Source of the DNA: Hypanus sabinus
Lineage: Eukaryota
Assembly (NCBI RefSeq): GCF_030144855.1
Contig: NC_082709.1
Location: 151,590,001 to 151,654,000, forward strand
Direction: 5' to 3'
DNA length: 64,000 nt
The translations under genes and the position numbers were made by a program. How positions within the stretch are numbered: position 1 is the stretch's first letter; the number at the start of each line of letters is the position of its first letter. Shown here piece after piece: positions 5,811 through 52,812 of this stretch. A model generated the notes under the pieces. It saw only the letters and a list, made by a program, of their open reading frames with translations. It searched no databases and was not told the origin of the DNA.

Positions 5811-34750
<28,940 letters not shown>

Positions 34751-40185: not shown

Positions 40186-40783
40186 CAGAAGGGAAAATTG
40201 AAAGAAGATGTTGCTTGAACTGGAAAATGGTAGCCACAAGGAAAAAAATAGTCTGAAGGATGTTTGGAACGAAGGTGCTGAAGGGAGGTTTAACTGAGGA
40301 TAATACAGTATAAAGGAAAGCAGGGCCAAAGACACCAATATGACAGTATTTCCCATGGATGTCAAAAGCCAAGAGGCATAGACTTAAAGTACTTGTTGTA
40401 AAGATGAAAAATGTTTTCATCAAATGGTGACAGGTATCGAGATCTTATTTTCTGAAAGAGTGATTAGGGCATTATTTGAAGAACACATGGATGAAGTGCT
40501 AAAGTATAGGTTGAGACTGTATTGCTTCTTTTGACCAGCGCAGTTGCAAGCTGTGTTGTAAATTTTTACTAATTCTAAGATCAGCTGTATCAATGTTTCT
40601 ATTCTGCTCTTTTATCTTACTTCCATATGAACTTTCAGTATTATTCACTGAATAATACTGAATTTAAAACTGAACTGTTAGTAGTCTAAATGAAACATAC
40701 TATTGATGAATAAACAATTGTGATCATGCATACCAAACAATTGAAAAAGAAAAAATTGAAAACAATTGATACTGAAAAAGTTT

Positions 40784-41437
40784 TGTAACTCCCTGGGTCG
40801 CCTCAGGCTCGCTCAGCTCGTTCTCGTCTAGGGGGAGCAGCCTTCGGCCCCCTAACTGGGTAATCAGCTGGTGTGGATGCTGTGTGATGTCCCCGCCTCG
40901 CCCAAAACCAGACAGTACACCATATGCGATTAAATGAGTACAATTTATAAAGGTTACTATAACTAAGTGATTAATAACGATACAGTATATATGAAGAGAA
41001 AATTAAAGAAAAGGCGCCAAACTTATCAAAGTCCAAACCACTTCGTACACAACTGTTGGAGCTCAATTACTGAAGTCTTCTGGCCACCATTCGATCCCCT
41101 CCGAACTCCTCGACTCGCAGCTCAGGACCCTCCGAACTCCTCGACTCGCAGCTCAGGACCCTCCGAGTGGTCAACCAAGCACATCTCACTTCATCCCCCC
41201 CCCCCCTCGGAGAATCTCCCGGCCTCGGACCCCCCTTTGGGGTCCGATCCTCGCCCAGCTTAGAGCATTGCGTCCTCTCTCTCGACCCCCTCGCGCCGAT
41301 CTGCCCAAAAGCCCGTCAACAAAAGCTTACAGACTCAGAAGAAAGAACATTAATCCCCATTTGGTTTACAAAGGAATACCATTCTCGTTATCAGTAAATT
41401 AGCATTCCTGCTAGTTAACAAAAGGAAACCCTTTACA
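40784..41437 (-). repeat. 3' LTR (654 bp)
   Basis: tgtaactccctggg...ccctttaca; immediately follows the PPT on the minus strand. Confidence 0.95.
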
Positions 41438-41450
41438 CACTTCCTCCACC
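41438..41450 (-). promoter_or_regulatory. Polypurine tract
   Basis: Minus strand GGTGGAGGAAGTG directly abutting the 3' LTR. Confidence 0.8.
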
Positions 41451-41877
41451 AAATAAAAGTCATGTCCTAATGACTACTAAATAACTCGCCACCTTTCCTG
41501 CCAACACACCGTAACCCAAGCACAAACAGTGACATCTCCTCCCCACACAGTAACCCTCACGCCCTGTTCCTCAGGCGCTACTTAGGCCAACTATCTGGGA
41601 GTTCCCTAACCCTTCTGAGGCCTCCGTACCCCCTCACCTAAACCCTTCAGGCTCGGACACAACTGGGGATACCTTGGGCCCACTACCAACTCCTCTCTCA
41701 ACCTCTCACTCATGCCCCACACTGCACACAGCTAACCCTCCCCGCTACACCTGACTCAATGGGAGAAGGGCCAAAGGTCTCTTCCTCAATCGAGGGAAAG
41801 TCAGCAAAAGGCAGCATGTATCACACATCCAGCACATCATCCATCGAATCTGTATTCTTCCTCATTCCTGTGATCGG

Positions 41878-42246
41878 TAGCTGCTGTTTGATCTTCTCCA
41901 AACGGAAACACGTGGCCTGCACTGCTCCCGCAGTCTCTTCAGCCTCCTGTTCAGTATTCACTGCACTTCTCTCCAGCTTTTTCTTCCTCATGACTTCTTC
42001 CAGATCAACTTTCAGGTTTTGCACTTCATTTGAACTGTCGATGGTCATCTTCAGGTTCCCTTCAAGCTTCCGCTTCTCTCTTCTGAGATTCGTCTGTAAT
42101 TTCTTCACCTCTGCAAACTCCCCTCTCCGGGTTCTCAGTTTGCTATTACCCTCAGTCAGACAACTTTCTTCATTCTCTCCAACTTGTAAGTCTTCCGAAT
42201 GGTTCCAGATCACTTTCTCCAGTCTCTCCGTCTTCATATCAAACTT
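41878..42246 (-). pseudogene. Captured sarcomeric myosin heavy-chain rod fragments (MYH16-like) inside the LTR element
   Basis: [20 protein letters not shown]...[50 protein letters not shown] and [24 protein letters not shown] align by eye with myosin II rod motifs DDLQAEEDKVNxLTKxxxKL...EKKLRxDLERAKRKLEGDLK and LQEAEExxEAVxAKCxSLEKTKQRL. Confidence 0.8.
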
Positions 42247-42266
42247 GATTCCGTAGAGACAGTCAC

Positions 42267-43406
42267 TCACGAGCTGCGACCTTCGCCAGCCCTGGCACGT
42301 GTCTCGGTAGTTCTCAGCTGCTCCTGCAACGACCTCACTTCATATTCTCCTGAGGCAAATCCAAGTACCAAGAGATCATCTACACACACCAAAACTCCAA
42401 ACGCCTCCACATCCCCTATCGTCTTCCACCTGCCCCGCAGAAAGGTTGCAAGGGCTCCAGATATGCCCTGTGGCATCTTTTTGGACCCGAAGACTCCTAG
42501 GGAATGTATAACGGCCTTCTTCTCCTTGTCGGCCCCACTCATCGGGATCTGGCAACATCCACTCCTCCGATCCAGCACCTTAAACCACATCGCACCACTC
42601 AGACAGGCCATCGCCTCTCTGGCCCTCAGGGCCATATTCTGGTCACTGACAGTGCGCCTCTTCAACGCAATATAATCCACACACACGCTGCCTACATCTT
42701 CCACGGCTGTAGGGGCCAGTCGCCGCAACCTCTCTCTCTCCGAGGTGTCTTCAGCAGTCAACTCCCCTCCCTTGTGGTATTTCGCAGCGTCCACGAAGAG
42801 GGTCTCACCCTCAGATACTTCCCCCAGGCCGTACCACCACTGGCTCTTGTTTGAATTCGGTATCAGCCCAATGCTGCTACACACGTCCGCACAAGCTGCT
42901 CGAAACCCTGGGTGCTTCGACAATGCCTCCAAACAACGCTCACCCGCCTCCTCCGGGCAGGCTCCCAAGCGCACCAGCAGGATTTTGGTTCTCTCTGGAA
43001 CAGAAACGCTGCCCGTCTCAACAGGGTCCGGACACATCAGCATTAACGATTCATGAACCTCAGTCTCCTCCACATTTGCCTCTAAGAACTCCATTTTCAC
43101 TGACCAACAACCGCTGTCTGGATAATCACCGGCACTGGTACCCCGAATCTCCAGTGTCCTCAATGTTGTCAAGGGTAAATGCTTCCAATAACGGTTATGA
43201 AACAAACTGTACAGCAACTTCACCGGCGCCCCGGTGCCGAGGATGGCTTTAACTTGACTTCCATCCATCCGTAACAACACCTGTGCGCATGGCCCCTCTA
43301 AGCCTTCAGGAATAGGGTCTGCTCCTTTCGGGAGTTCCTTGGTACATTGCTGGGAACGTGCTCCCCCAGAGACCCCAAGCCGTTCCCCCACTGGGCCTCC
43401 TCTAAG
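42267..43406 (-). pseudogene. Degenerate Gypsy pol: aspartic protease and partial RT, catalytic motifs mutated, frame open
   Basis: [11 protein letters not shown] (DTG to GTG), [36 protein letters not shown]...[24 protein letters not shown] (YxDD to CVDD). Confidence 0.85.
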
Positions 43407-43870
43407 TTTCCCGACACCTCTCGAATCAACGGAACAACTGATCCCCTTGGCACCACAAGCAATTTATCTGCTCCCCTAGGCAAAAAGGGATACCCTAAAA
43501 ACTTCCCACCAATCTCCTGCCACGGATATGATAAGCCCCCCAGCTGCGGCATTTGACTTCCAGTCGAACCACACGCATTTTCCCACACTTTCCCAGAACT
43601 GGCAGCGGTCACTTCGAGGTAATTGCGCCCGACAGTTCTAACAAAGTCACCAGCCCGCCTACTCAAACTTTCAACCCATCCCTGTCGCTTTCCCTCAGCC
43701 AAGCACTGCCACTCACCCAACAACTGAGAGGTCCGCTCCGCCCACGCCTCCGCCACTTTAGGGCTGGACATTATTCCAATAACCGGGCGGAGCTCACCAC
43801 TGCTGAAACATCCCAACCTGTCACTCCTCAATCTCCAAACAGTACGGACAACCCATGGTCCCACCACCAT
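43298..43870 (-). CDS. Truncated PNMA-like Gypsy Gag (frame open from 44020; first ATG at 43870)
   Basis: [38 protein letters not shown] matches the PNMA/Gypsy capsid motif EAWxEQxxQxLxEWQCSxxxKRQRLVESLRGPAADIV. ATG context gaaATGg is a strong Kozak. Confidence 0.8.
43352..43412 (-). promoter_or_regulatory. -1 programmed ribosomal frameshift signal (G GGA AAC + H-type pseudoknot)
   Basis: Heptamer at 43412-43406 in the correct gag phase; 6-nt spacer; stem 1 GAGGCCC/GGGUCUC, stem 2 GGGAACG/CGUUCCC; the -1 frame is open into pol. Confidence 0.85.
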
Positions 43871-44039
43871 TTCGTCAGCACTAGTCGGAACTCGAACAAC
43901 GACAATTGCTACCAACAGCAGCCACCCCACCCAACACACACACAACGATAACCAGCAATCACACACCCACAAAGGCACACCAGCTCTTCGCCGCAGACAC
44001 AATTTAAAGAGGGTGATCACACAGCTTCCACAGAAATCA

Positions 44040-44057
44040 ACCCCGGACGAGCCCCCA
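44040..44057 (-). promoter_or_regulatory. Primer binding site complementary to the tRNA-Pro 3' end
   Basis: Minus strand TGGGGGCTCGTCCGGGGT, 3 nt from the LTR; 17/18 match to the canonical tRNA-Pro PBS TGGGGGCTCGTCCGGGAT. Confidence 0.92.
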
Positions 44058-44060
44058 CAA

Positions 44061-44728
44061 TGTAACTCCCTGGGTCGCCTCAGGCTCGCTCAGCTCGTTC
44101 TCGTCTAGGGGGAGCAGCCTTCGGCCCCGCCAAACTGGGTAATCAGCTGGTGTGGATGCTGTGTGATGTCCCCGCCTCGCCCAAAAACAGACAGCACACC
44201 ATATGCGATTAAATGAGTACAATTTATAAAGGTTACTATAACTAAGTGATTAATAACGATACAGTATATATGAAGAGAAAATTAAAGAAAAGGCGCCGAA
44301 CTTATCAAAGTCCAAACCACTTCGTGCACAGCCGTTGGAGCTCAATTACTGAAGTCTTCTGGCCACCATTCGATCTCCTCCGAACTCCTCGACTCTCCAA
44401 ACAGCTCAGGACCCTCCGAGTGGTCAACCAAGCACATCTAGCTTCATTCCCCCCCCCCACCTCAGAGAATCTCCCGGCCTCGGACCCCCCTTTGGGGTCC
44501 GATCCTCGCCCAGCTTAGAACATTGCGTCCTCTCTCTCGACCCCCTCGCGCCGATCTGCCCAAAAGTCCGTCAACAAAAGCTTACAGACTCAGAAGAAAG
44601 AACATTAATCCCCATTTGGTTTACAAAGGAATACCATTCTCGTTATCAGTAAATTAGCATTCCTGCTAGTTAACAAAAGGAAACCCTTTCCCAACAGTAA
44701 CAAAGAAAAAAAAGAAACCCCCTTTACA
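44061..44728 (-). repeat. 5' LTR (668 bp)
   Basis: tgtaactccctggg...cctttaca; direct repeat of 40784-41437; adjoins the PBS on the minus strand. Confidence 0.95.
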
Positions 44729-44998
44729 TGTTTTTCACACCATTCACTGTAAATTCTTGATACAATGTAAGTCCCAGATACCCAAACCACCCTGTTTGGC
44801 ACCAATAACCATTCCAAGGTCCAAGTCACTAAGGTCACATTTCTTCCGAATTCTGATGTTTGGTCAGAACAGCAACAGAACCCCTTGACCAAGTATGGAT
44901 GCTTTTTTGTGTTGAGTTGCTGCCACATGATTGGCTGATAAGATATTTGTGTTAATGAGCAGGTGTAAAGATGTATCTAATAAATTGACCACTGAGTG
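44729..44998. mobile_element. Tc1-family remnant with one TIR
   Basis: Ends ...gagcaggtgtaaagatgtatctaataaattgaccactgagtg|TA. Confidence 0.65.
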
Positions 44999-45412: not shown

Positions 45413-48310
45413 ACATAAGAACATAAGAAATAGGAGCAGAGGAAGGCAATTTGGCCCATTGAGCCTGCTTTGCCATTCAATAAGATCATGGGTGATATGG
45501 CCATGGACTCATCCCACCTACCTGCCTTTTCCCATAACCCTTAATTCCCCTACAATGCAAAAATCTATACAACCTTGTCATAAATATATTTACTGAGGTA
45601 GCCTCCACTCCTTCATTGGGCAGAGAATTCCAGAGATTTACCACTCTCTGGGACAAGCAGTTCCTCTTCATCTCCATCCTAAATTTACTCGCCCAAATCT
45701 TGAGGCTAGTTCTCGCCTCACCTACCAATGGAAACAACTTCCCTGCCTCTATCTTATCTATTCCTTTCATAATTTTATGTTTCTATAAGATCTCCTCTCA
45801 TTCTTCTGAATTCCGTCAAGTACAGTCCCAGGTGACTCAGTTTCTCCTCATAGTCAAATCCCCTCATCCCTGGAATCAACCTGGTAAACCTCCTTGAAAG
45901 CCAGTATATCCTTCCTCAAATAAGGAGACCAGAACTGCACACACTACTCCTGTAAAGTTGCAGTATAACCTCCCTATTCTTAAATTCAATCCCCCTAGCA
46001 ATGGGGGATTCCATTTGCCTTCTTGACAGCCTGCTGCACCTGCAAACCCACCTTTTGTGATTCATGCACAAATCTCTTAGCACAACAGCATACTGCAAAT
46101 TTTTACCATTTAAATAGTAATCTGTTCTTTCATTATTCCTTCCATTTACTAACATTGTACTCCATCTGCCAGAGCCTTGCCCACTCACTTAACCTACCTA
46201 TATCTCTCTGCAGACTCTCTGTATCTTCTGCACAATTTGCTTTTCCACTCAATTTAGTATCATCAGAAAACTTAGATACACTATACTCAGTCCCCTCTTC
46301 CAGATCATTAATGTATATCATGAACAGATGAGGGGCCAGCACTGTACATTAGCACATAAAACAATAATAAACCAATGTCTGTATCTCTCAACTGCCGTAT
46401 AATTCCTGCACAATCATGTACCAATGTAACATCTTCTAGAACACCTCTAATCATATTTGCCTTCACCAACACGCCAGGCAGCACATAGCAGGCACCCATC
46501 ACTTTCTATGTTAAAAACAAAAAGCCCACACTACTCATTTGAATGTATCCCTCTCACAGTAAATGCATGCCCTCTGGTATTAGATATTTCAAACCTAGGC
46601 AAAAATGTATATATATTGGCCGGCTACTCTATGCCTCCCATAATTTTATGACCTCCTACCAGCTTCTGCAGCTCCAGAAAAAAATGACCAAAATTTGTCC
46701 AACCTTTCCCTATGGTATCTGCAAAGAGCTACCTGCAAACCTCTCTGTACTCTCTTCAAAGCCTTGACATCCTTCCCATAATGGGGTGACCAAAACTGAA
46801 AATAATATTCCAGATGGAGTTTTATAAAGCTGCAAATAACTTACCAACTCTTGAACTAAATTCCTTGATGAATAAAAGCAAGCATGTGATATGCCTTCTT
46901 TGCCATCCGATCAATCTGTGCAGCCACTTTCAGGGAGCTAAAGACTTGGACCACAAGATCCCTCTACACATCAACACTATTAGAGGACTTGCTATTAACA
47001 TTGTATTGTCCATTAACATTTGCTCTCCTGAAGTGCAGCTTCTCATATTTGTCTGGCTTAAACTTCATCTGCCATTTTTAAGCTCATATCTGCAACTGAT
47101 CTATATCCCACTGCATTCTTTGTCAGTTTTCTACGCGATCTACAACATCACCAATCTTTGTAGCATTTTTAAACTTACTAACCAACACAGCTACAGTATG
47201 TTTCTCATCCAGGACATTTATATCACAACCAGCAGAATTCCTGGTATAGATCCCTGTAAAACCACCAGTTACAGACCACCAGCCAGAATAAGTTCTGTTG
47301 ACCATTACTCTCTGCCTTCAATGGGTAAGCCAGTTCTAAATCTAAACGGACAAGTCACCATGCATCTTAATCTTCTGGATGAGCCTCCCATGAGGGACCT
47401 TGTCAACCATCTCACTAAAATCCATGTAGACAACATCCACAGCTCTACCTTCATCAATCACCTTATTCACTTCCTCAAAAACCTCAGTTTATTAAGACCT
47501 GACACATGATCCCTCTATCATGTTCACTCTGAGTGCATCTGTGTTATTATCCCTGATTAATTGCATTACTCCCCCACACCCACCCCTTCCCACTTTTACT
47601 TCCTACTCTGTTTTTTCTAAGACATCAGGATCACGGAACATTTTGAATCCATTCCCATTCTTCTTGCAACCAAGTCTCTGTTATGGCCACAGTGTCATAG
47701 CTGTATGCTGTTACCTATGCACTAAGTTCATCACCTTACCCTTAAAATGCCTAGTATTAAAATAGACACATTTCATCCTGTCCATCCCATTGTATCTACT
47801 ACATAGCCCTGCTTGATCTTACTGGTCATGGCATCTACCTTCCTCTCAATCCCTCCACTTTCTGGTTCCCATCCTCCTGCCAAACTAATTTTAACCCTCC
47901 TGGGTATCAGTAGTTAGCTTCCTAGTTAGGATATTGGTTCCTCTCCAGTTATGATGCAAACTGTCTCTTTTATTCAACATTCAAGATTGTTTATTATCAT
48001 TTGTCAATCCACGTGTCACCCCTGCCCCAATAAAGTTTCCAACGATCCAAGAATCTGAAACCCTGCAGCTACCACTCATTTATCTGTTCTATCTTTCTTT
48101 GACTAGCATGTGGCACCATGAATAATCCAGAGGTGAACACTTCTGAGGTCCTTCTTTTCAGCCTCTTTCCTAACTCCCTGTATTTGCTGTACAGGACCTT
48201 TTCTCCCTTTCTACCTCGTCATTGGTGTATCACAGCCTCTGGCTGCTCACCCTCCCACTTGAAAATGTTCTAGAGCTCTGTGACATCCTCAACCCTTACA
48301 CACCATCCTG
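45413..48310 (-). mobile_element. Cluster of CR1 LINE fragments
   Basis: aacataagaacataagaaataggagc tail; LFMIYINDLEEGTEYSVSKFSDDTKLSG; a second RT fragment at about 46500-47500; ORF1-like remnant at about 47850-48310. Confidence 0.85.
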
Positions 48311-52186: not shown

Positions 52187-52812
52187 CAGTCGGCCCTCCT
52201 TATCCGCAAGGGATTGGTTCCGGGACCCCTCGCAGATACCAAAAAACGTGGATGCTCAAGTCCCTTATTCAACTTGTCTTAATGCAGTGGACCTTAGGAC
52301 CCAGCAGAACCCCAGACCTTATTTAACCGTTCTCAGTGCAGTGAACATTAGGACCTGGCAGTAGAACTCTGAATCCGCAGTGTTTCTGTTCACGAAAATA
52401 ATCACGATCACAATCAAAAATAAAGTGGAAATAATAAAGCGATCAGAAAAAGGTGAAACACCATCAGTTATTGTAAAAGCGTTAGGCTACTTCGGTCAAC
52501 AATTGGAACAATTTTAAAGGATAAAAGTGAGAAAGGCCCTGCCCCAATGAAAGCTACAATTATTACTAAGCAATATAGTGGTTTAATTACTGGGTTTTGG
52601 GGTTTTGAGTTNNNNNNNNNNNNNNNNNNNNNNNNNNNNNNNNNNNNNNNNNNNNNNNNNNNNNNNNNNNNNNNNNNNNNNNNNNNNNNNNNNNNNNNNN
52701 NNNNNNNNNNNNNNNNNNNNNNNNNNNNNNNNNNNNNNNNNNNNNNTGAAGAGCAGTTCCGTGTTTTCTCGATTCATGGTTGGTTGAATTTTAGGATAAG
52801 GAGGGCCGACTG
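52187..52812 (+). mobile_element. Non-autonomous TcMar-Tigger element with an HTH fragment, spanning an assembly gap and inserted in an old CR1
   Basis: TA|cagtcggccctccttatcc ... ggataaggagggccgactg|TA perfect TIRs. Confidence 0.85.
52612..52746. other. Assembly gap (135 N)
   Basis: Run of n characters. Confidence 0.99.

Follow-up and report, generated by a model that had tools for sequence, protein, structure and literature searches.

The window (the whole 64-kb stretch of Hypanus sabinus DNA that was analysed) contains, on its minus strand, an LTR element that extends from position 40784 to position 44728. A sequence-only reading of the same DNA had listed two LTRs, a PBS, gag, a frameshift signal, protease, RT, a coiled-coil ORF, a tail and a PPT, and each of these parts is present at its position on that strand. 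In the order in which they are read, the features are:

40784-44728, minus strand: the whole LTR element.
44729..44733, minus strand: candidate 5' target-site duplication, AAACA (sequence read).
44061..44728, minus strand: 5' LTR, 668 nt, TG..CA (direct repeats, alignment, divergence, ends read).
44042..44057, minus strand: PBS, complementary to the 3' end of tRNA-Pro, 3 nt past the 5' LTR (match to a published probe).
43298..44020, minus strand: PNMA-type gag remnant, with detectable homology confined to 43490-43795.
43406..43412, minus strand: slippery heptamer G_GGA_AAC (GGGAAAC) in the gag frame (sequence and ORF frames).
42263..43405, minus strand: pol remnant, one broken gene (-1 frame and alignment of relatives).
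about 42831-43295, minus strand: protease-like stretch.
about 42263-42755, minus strand: partial RT, ending at the palm/thumb border.
41878..42262, minus strand: captured myosin-II rod ('cargo'), in sense orientation and without introns (PDB, profile, shuffles, exon borders).
41451..41877, minus strand: tail between cargo and PPT, common to Hypanus and Mobula sister copies.
41440..41450, minus strand: PPT, 11 nt, abutting the 3' LTR (sequence read).
40784..41439, minus strand: 3' LTR, 656 nt (direct repeats, alignment, divergence).
40779..40783, minus strand: candidate 3' target-site duplication, AAACT (sequence read).

The two LTRs both end in TG..CA and are 97.1% identical, with a K2P divergence of 0.029 (18 substitutions and 3 indel runs; 625 aligned bases); they are similar, and their earlier description as 'nearly identical' was too strong. 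The 3' LTR contains a 31-nt unit repeated 2.3 times at 41097-41166, and the 5' LTR has one unit fewer and opens with an additional, imperfect duplication of about 34 nt. The candidate target-site duplication (AAACA vs. AAACT) agrees at 4 of 5 positions and lies in an A-rich context. Because the 64-kb window has no tRNA gene (and no Rfam family was found in it), the proposed tRNA-Pro PBS was checked by matching its 16 nt to the literature. They coincide letter for letter with positions 1-16 of the 17-nt probe for 3'tRF-Pro(AGG) in PMC4688932, a probe in antisense to the 3' terminus of zebrafish tRNA-Pro(AGG), and the same string is also the PBS of the probe in PMC4587795; the assignment to tRNA-Pro is thus borne out. 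The PPT, purine at 10 of its 11 positions, directly adjoins the 3' LTR, as had been proposed. No second copy of the element, and no solo LTR, was found elsewhere in the 64-kb window.

The gag nature of the first ORF is supported by comparison with a related complete element, L005; a search of 5.8 billion proteins with the ORF itself returned no homologues. In this comparison (tblastn), residues 165-269 of the 381-aa PNMA_N+PNMA_C gag of L005 (105/381) align to the remnant with 31% identity (E=4e-9). The match of the ORF to Pfam PNMA is weak and under the cutoff (E=1.1e-3), and it is the alignment with the relative that supports the earlier description of a PNMA-like gag, as a remnant. The pol frame is -1 relative to the gag frame and is open from GGGAAAC into pol, in agreement with the -1 frameshift signal that had been read at this position. 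A hairpin begins 5 nt 3' of the heptamer; the RNA after the heptamer folds no better than shuffles (z=0.63), and the heptamer alone shows no enrichment across the window.

The pol remnant retains two recognisable parts, both proposed previously: the protease-like stretch, with 36% identity to the relative P0007 (E=2e-27), and the partial RT, with 42% identity to P0007 (E=5e-37). Significant PDB matches of the pol ORF are only Ty3 RT (E=2e-9) and Ty3 Gag-Pol (E=1.4e-8), an alignment of family members shows where the likeness to RT ends, an exact look-up of the window pol ORF returned no record, and a Pfam search with the window pol and cargo ORFs returned no family at E<=1. Relatives of the element carry RT_RNaseH_2, Integrase_H2C2 and rve domains, and in the related complete element (L005/L006) the order is PNMA-type gag, PR-RT, RH-IN. 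The window matches the gag, PR and RT of this relative, but not its RH-IN: the relative's RH-IN protein finds no match anywhere in the window, as expected from the earlier statement that RNase H and integrase are missing, and the complete pol order PR-RT-RH-IN is not found in the window copy. Direct repeats, LTR alignment, the Ty3 RT match and the comparison with the complete relative agree in identifying a Ty3/Gypsy-type LTR element on the minus strand. Because pol is reduced to a protease-like stretch and part of the RT, and because there is no match to RH-IN, we regard the window copy as a non-autonomous derivative and not as a complete Ty3/Gypsy member.

The sequence that had been proposed to be a myosin rod in place of RNase H and integrase lies after the truncated RT and ahead of the PPT, in the position that RH-IN occupies in relatives. 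The coiled-coil ORF spans 41821-42270, with the sequence quoted in that proposal. Searched alone against the PDB, it matches Myosin-7 at about residues 998-1102 (E=2e-6), with a second piece at about 1397-1421; other rod segments score negative, and lamin, dynein and SNAP-25 match only at E>0.1. A profile of 15 family members matches Myosin-4 (E=1.6e-15) and Myosin-7 (E=3.5e-14) in three collinear pieces (about 991-1114, 1145-1182 and 1394-1425), and the same profile also matches Ty3 RT (E=6.7e-13); in the Mobula copy P0024, the cargo reaches back to about rod position 922. The likeness to myosin exceeds that of composition- and heptad-preserving shuffles by z=17-18. The cargo is 58-70% identical to a myosin-like protein of Narcine, P0021 (58% for the window copy), which itself matches Myosin-7 964-1130 with E=2e-23. 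Rod matches comprise vertebrate Myosin-4 and Myosin-7 and invertebrate striated-muscle myosins, and no smooth-muscle or non-muscle chain occurs among the cargo matches at E<=0.01. Because of the PDB searches, the family profile and the shuffle tests, we conclude that the coiled-coil ORF is a real sarcomeric class-II myosin rod, in line with the class II rod that the homology check suggested with the original proposal was to look for.

Other searches place this result in context. A search of 1.84 billion representative proteins with the single ORF yielded nothing but members of the ray family and short fragments that resemble myosin, and no full-length myosin at E<=1e-3. Pfam Myosin_tail_1 gives nothing above the gathering score with the window ORF or with ten family members (these ten sister proteins give weak RVT_1 only), and Narcine P0021 reaches 28.9 bits against a cutoff of 38.1. 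The cargo fragments are short, deleted and diverged. The label 'MYH16-like' for the cargo has indirect support only, from names and a motif and not from phylogeny: five family members bear the NCBI name 'putative uncharacterized protein MYH16' (others are 'myosin heavy chain, striated/cardiac/skeletal-like'), and a motif around LKMTID is common to the genomic exons P0022 and P0023 and Narcine P0021 and is absent from Myosin-7 and Myosin-4. The best non-batoid matches of the cargo are genomic exons with the same motif. MYH16 has been reported in sharks (PMC6402096).

In genomic contig L001, a 1.1-kb intron separates two consecutive myosin exons, whose borders are AG/GT. Genomic contigs L001 and L003 together define two exon borders, and the cargo runs continuously over both; it is thus free of introns at the two borders tested. 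Because both borders are crossed without interruption, we consider the cargo to derive from spliced RNA. Two internal deletions of the cargo are common to all copies, one of them at a ..LEE.. motif that occurs at both myosin sites. Exon skipping was considered as their origin and set aside, the one comparable border lying a few codons inside an exon and another lying at the repeated ..LEE.. motif; for the same reason, deletion at short homologies is the favoured explanation. The tail that follows the cargo was delimited by alignment of P0001, P0016, P0004, P0017 and P0010, with the match to P0016 extending to 41636 (tblastn), and shows no likeness to myosin or to the ORFs of L005.

The chimeric structure is not confined to the window. 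The RT-cargo and cargo-tail junctions recur, at the protein level, in gene models of Hypanus sabinus and Mobula hypostoma, which lie on at least 6 and at least 5 chromosomes, respectively, counted as contigs of different length. Hemitrygon akajei and M. birostris contribute one family gene model each; in all, at least 14 gene models, distributed over many chromosomes and four ray species, have the same two junctions. RT and cargo lie in one ORF, with the same junction, in P0005, P0006 and P0008 (H. sabinus) and in P0010, P0019 and P0024 (M. hypostoma), and the cargo-tail junction is common to the five proteins used to delimit the tail. Cargo identity is 85-98% among dasyatid copies and 45-70% between these and Mobula copies. 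Recurrence of the same junctions on many chromosomes in several rays points to one ancient capture, followed by amplification, and the multi-copy family that had been predicted from the single copy is thus observed in protein-level gene models. A protein search covering 0.55-1.75 times the query length (up to 654 aa) found no autonomous partner with matching LTR ends or PBS; L005, the complete relative that comes closest, shares only 36-42% identity and does not have the tRNA-Pro PBS of the window copy but a different one. Mobilisation would have occurred in trans.

Taken together, the results lead us to interpret 40784-44728, with a probability of roughly 85%, as an old and decayed member of a non-autonomous family of LTR retrotransposons (Ty3/Gypsy, Metaviridae-type) that resides in myliobatiform rays and in which the part of pol after the RT palm has been swapped for a spliced myosin rod. 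The window copy is now inert. According to this interpretation, everything in the pol of the founder past the RT palm (thumb, RNase H and integrase) would have been exchanged for spliced sarcomeric class-II myosin rod sequence, corresponding to about rod residues 920-1425 and joined in frame to RT. The capture would have proceeded via RNA: a host or chimeric transcript could have been packaged and then joined by non-homologous template switches as it was reverse-transcribed, or a rearranged provirus could have been read through. The capture would have occurred once, prior to the dasyatid-mobulid split, and the two internal deletions present in all copies would have arisen early. The chimera would have retained the cis signals (LTRs, PBS, PPT and leader/gag region) and would have been copied by the proteins of a complete partner element, giving rise to lineage-specific subfamilies that then lost more pieces. 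The window copy itself, with its LTR K2P of 0.029, inserted long after the capture.

Four other readings of the locus are less probable, to different degrees. That the RT-myosin-rod fusion is functional and kept by selection is unlikely, although it is the strongest of the four: selection could act for the element, with the coiled coil aiding oligomerisation or the entry of product or RNA into the partner's particles, or for the host, through domesticated, expressed copies, and the long persistence across ray lineages would then reflect selection on the cargo. Several copies do keep RT and cargo in a single open frame of 250-400 codons, copies are predicted as genes by NCBI (in one SDHAF3 isoform model, the terminal coding exon comes from a copy), and the family persists over deeply diverged ray lineages. 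However, gene models are a sample biased by selection for open frames, and the antisense strand across the cargo is likewise open, for 165 codons; the openness of the cargo therefore follows from base composition. Moreover, the copies show many independent internal deletions, each removing different parts of the cargo, and, in comparison with its sisters, the window copy is interrupted by stops and by a change of frame. Very unlikely, in our judgement, is a capture directly from DNA, in which a copy of the element and a myosin gene recombined or underwent gene conversion; the one general point in its favour is that the 5' junction of retroviral transductions is classically formed at the DNA level, but introns are missing at both tested exon borders, one of them the site of the 1.1-kb intron in the genomic contig.

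Two further readings are already contradicted by the data, and we give them hardly any credence. Were the coiled coil a native retroelement ORF, or its likeness to myosin merely one of coiled-coil composition, the absence of Pfam Myosin_tail_1 from the cargo copies would be accommodated, and coiled coils do often yield spurious matches; the matches, however, fall at fixed collinear rod positions with other rod segments negative, far exceed the shuffled controls, and do not extend to lamin, dynein or SNAP-25, and the related complete element has nothing like the cargo. Were the structure a one-off accident, in which a processed myosin pseudogene or fragment landed in an already dead element and founded no family, a single copy within the 64-kb window would be expected, as is found, but the recurrence of both junctions on many chromosomes of four species speaks directly against it. 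With respect to the family reading that we prefer, horizontal transfer between ray lineages may have taken the place of one ancestral capture.

Plants and acutely transforming retroviruses provide well-documented cases in which LTR retroelements captured host genes; for vertebrate germline retrotransposons, to our knowledge, such capture has been reported only occasionally. A 2014 study listed in PMC6431247 reportedly described host gene sequence within germline LTR retroelements of a vertebrate; those elements are retroviruses (ERVs) and not Ty3/Gypsy, and both cargo and host clade differ from those of the ray family. Literature searches found no description of a myosin-carrying ray element family, in line with the earlier statement that none was known, and the ray element seems not to have been described before. 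It represents a type of gene capture that is already known but of which vertebrate examples are rare.

Among known systems, maize Bs1 and other plant LTR retrotransposons carry transduced host gene fragments (reviewed in PMC13317346). Like the ray family, Bs1 is non-autonomous, keeps LTRs and part of gag, and has, between its LTRs, pieces of host coding sequence that make up a hybrid ORF together with sequence of the element; other elements mobilise it, and read-through transduction or aberrant template switching has been proposed as its route of origin (PMC13317346). Bs1 has a plant host and carries pieces of three genes, whereas the ray family is a Ty3/Gypsy family with a PNMA-type gag, resides in several genera of cartilaginous fish, and carries a single source gene, the myosin rod, in frame with a truncated RT. 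In acutely transforming retroviruses (Stehelin et al. 1976, as cited in PMC6431247), spliced host cDNA likewise takes the place of part of pol (and env), which requires two non-homologous junctions, and the resulting genomes are replication-defective, depend on a helper and encode element-host fusion proteins. Such viruses are exogenous and short-lived, with cargo selected for growth promotion in somatic cells; the ray family, in contrast, is a germline retrotransposon of long persistence that carries a fragment of a structural protein, with no sign of function. LARDs and TRIMs (PMC6431247, PMC13317346) also keep LTR, PBS and PPT, have lost coding capacity and are copied in trans, but no host coding sequence can be recognised in their internal regions. 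LTR retrotransposons of bdelloid rotifers (PMC5408684) are animal elements that gained extra ORFs; they stay autonomous with ORFs added, whereas the ray cargo replaces essential pol domains.

The ray family thus consists of a Ty3/Gypsy derivative with a spliced myosin rod fused to a truncated RT, present on many chromosomes in at least four ray species, and would show, as a record left by nature, how a defective element that carries cargo survives through a partner's proteins. The nested series of deletions shows how captured cargo erodes with time. The family also bears on genome annotation: pipelines label its copies as MYH16 or myosin-like genes, and at least one host gene model, the SDHAF3 isoform, contains a piece of the element.

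The 149-aa coiled-coil ORF of the element has the sequence quoted in the sequence-only reading, which assigned it to a host myosin rod captured by the retrotransposon, and protein comparisons bear that assignment out. Against all PDB sequences, the ORF matches Myosin-7 at residues ~998-1102 (E=2e-6, about 36% identity) and a second short ORF piece matches Myosin-7 at ~1397-1421; other segments of the same myosin rods give negative scores, and unrelated coiled-coil proteins give E>0.1. A profile built from an alignment of 15 family members matches Myosin-4 (E=1.6e-15) and Myosin-7 (E=3.5e-14) in three collinear rod pieces, ~991-1114, ~1145-1182 and ~1394-1425, and also matches Ty3 RT (E=6.7e-13). 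In one Mobula copy, P0024, the cargo reaches back to rod residue ~922. The nearest non-family protein, P0021 of Narcine bancroftii (modelled as "myosin-6-like isoform X4"), matches Myosin-7 at 964-1130 (E=2e-23) and is 58% identical to the window cargo and 70% identical to a Mobula copy. When the ORF is aligned locally to P0021 and to two myosin exon translations, P0022 and P0023, its scores exceed those of shuffled sequences by 14-18 standard deviations, and for P0021 the value is 17-18 standard deviations with composition-preserving and heptad-preserving shuffles alike. The Pfam model Myosin_tail_1 does not detect the cargo, and a related complete element (contigs L005 and L006) contains nothing resembling it. 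The results indicate that the coiled-coil ORF is myosin. The narrower label proposed for it, MYH16-like, is suggested by the NCBI names of five family members and by a cargo motif that also occurs in unnamed exons; MYH16 occurs in sharks (PMC6402096).

Genomic myosin exons point to the form in which the sequence was captured. A Logan contig, L001, carries two consecutive myosin exons with canonical AG/GT borders and a 1.1-kb intron between them, and a further contig, L003, carries the same first exon. Relative to these contigs, the cargo is uninterrupted both where the first exon begins and at the exon-exon junction. We therefore infer that the captured myosin sequence came from processed RNA.

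The cargo lies in a 3,945-bp minus-strand element that a direct-repeat search and alignment show to be bounded by two direct repeats. Its terminal and priming features, with the cargo and the segment that follows it, are as follows.

Features of the element in the window
44061-44728, minus strand: 5' LTR, a direct repeat that starts with TG and ends with CA
44042-44057, minus strand: primer-binding site (PBS), 16 nt, 3 bases past the 5' LTR
41878-42262, minus strand: myosin cargo
41451-41877, minus strand: tail, from the cargo to the polypurine tract
adjoining the 3' LTR, minus strand: polypurine tract (PPT), an 11-nt purine-rich tract
40784-41439, minus strand: 3' LTR, a direct repeat that starts with TG and ends with CA

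The two LTRs had been described as nearly identical; they are alike, but with 18 substitutions and 3 indel runs in 625 aligned bases (97.1% identity, K2P 0.029) that description is too strong. If substitution rates between 0.5 and 2 x 10^-9 per site per year are assumed, the insertion of the window copy would date to roughly 7-30 million years ago. The 5-base flanks read AAACA on one side and AAACT on the other. The 3' LTR contains a 31-nt unit repeated 2.3 times (41097-41166), of which the 5' LTR has one fewer, and the 5' LTR starts with an imperfect duplication of ~34 nt (44694-44728); these length changes are copy-specific. The 16-nt PBS exactly matches a northern probe from the literature that is antisense to the zebrafish tRNA-Pro(AGG) 3' end (PMC4688932), in agreement with the tRNA-Pro PBS proposed from sequence, and the probe used in PMC4587795 has this string as its PBS.

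To identify the coding remnants, we used as anatomical comparator only (36-42% amino-acid identity to the window copy) a distant complete relative reached through the protein P0007, present in two copies on different contigs (L005, 5340-14892, and L006) of assembly GCA_977066275.1. The relative is a full-length Ty3/Gypsy element with LTRs of ~960 bp (pairs 98-99% identical) and three genes: a 381-aa gag (PNMA_N and PNMA_C), a 554-aa PR-RT and a 649-aa RNase H-integrase. The window gag ORF (240 codons, no internal stops) aligns to residues 165-269 of the relative's gag (31% identity, E=4e-9); about one quarter of the full protein is recognisable, both ends being lost or unrecognisable. In this copy pol is read in the -1 frame with respect to gag, and a canonical heptamer, G_GGA_AAC, lies in the gag frame at 43406-43412 with the -1 frame open from there on, as expected for the frameshift signal noted previously; the RNA downstream of the heptamer has an unremarkable predicted fold. 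A protease-like stretch aligns to residues 2-158 of the relative's PR-RT (36%) with no stops or frameshifts; one substitution sets its active-site signature apart from the conserved form, and Pfam gives no match for this stretch. The RT aligns to residues 315-491 (42%) and matches Ty3 RT in the PDB (E=2e-9). It has two internal deletions relative to the proteins P0007 and P0013, one of the deletions common to sister copies; it shows one frame change and one stop near its end relative to sister copies; and it is cut off at the palm/thumb border. RNase H and integrase are entirely missing from the window copy, as had been claimed: the relative's RNase H-integrase protein finds no match anywhere in the window.

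The window copy keeps the cis signals for reverse transcription, and host sequence without introns, in sense orientation, stands in place of the enzymes that would follow the RT palm. Capture may have occurred by non-homologous recombination between host and element RNA while reverse transcription was under way, or a chimeric transcript may first have arisen by read-through; both routes are known from gene transduction by retroviruses and by plant LTR elements (PMC13317346, PMC6431247). In one of the shared deletions, the two rod sites brought together each carry an ..LEE.. motif, which fits a template jump at short homology. Later copying would have relied on a complete partner element, which our protein searches did not find. 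Gene capture by LTR elements is already known as a kind, from maize Bs1 and other plant cases (PMC13317346), and from acute transforming retroviruses and crocodilian ERVs (PMC6431247). Our literature search found no description of this ray element family or of any retrotransposon that carries myosin sequence.

Protein searches recovered family gene models in four ray species, Hypanus sabinus, Hemitrygon akajei, Mobula hypostoma and M. birostris, on contigs of six different lengths in H. sabinus and five in M. hypostoma. RT and cargo are joined in one open frame at the same junction in six models (P0005, P0006, P0008, P0010, P0019 and P0024), and the cargo-tail junction is common to five (P0001, P0016, P0004, P0017 and P0010). 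P0001 and P0024 are single-exon models, the latter antisense within another gene. In the cargo, dasyatid copies are 85-98% identical to one another (98% for the window copy and P0001) and 45-70% identical to Mobula copies. Compared with the rod, every copy has the same two internal deletions, and most have also lost sequence at the 5' end; the window copy, P0001 and P0005 have one further in-frame cargo deletion, and the window cargo has one stop where sister copies read through. At the protein level, the shared junctions in models from four species uphold the earlier suggestion of a propagating family and argue against a single accident. The simplest reading of these sequences would be a single capture that predates the split of these ray lineages, after which the family amplified and decayed over a long time; horizontal transfer between ray lineages is a conceivable alternative.

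An open cargo frame is no evidence of selection, since stops are absent from both strands because coiled-coil coding sequence is purine-rich; a 165-codon ORF is open opposite the cargo at 41759-42256 (plus strand). Copies from Hypanus and Mobula share a conserved tail, which matches neither myosin nor the ORFs of the relative on L005; it may derive from the 3' region of the parent element, from out-of-frame myosin sequence or from another source. P0004, an H. sabinus protein encoded outside the window and named by NCBI "succinate dehydrogenase assembly factor 3 isoform X1", combines an LYR-domain N-terminus with a piece of another element copy, made up of the tail and the 3' portion of the cargo; it looks like exonisation of that copy or an annotation artefact.

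Elsewhere in the window, an ORF at 27087-27647 (plus strand) forms one exon of a gene of the TMEM39 type (Pfam Tmp39, E=3.6e-31). The element is ~13 kb downstream of this exon in the opposite orientation and may sit inside or adjacent to the host gene. Short minus-strand ORFs at 45486-46188 and 959-1441 look like LINE-type reverse transcriptase tails; the two ORFs at 45.5-46.2 kb have no Pfam match, and the sole tool support is a weak, below-cutoff ALKBH8_N match at 962-1441 (E=7e-4). The window also contains a run of 135 N at 52612-52746 and, at 2717-2818, a 53-nt tandem repeat of 1.9 copies with 95% matches.
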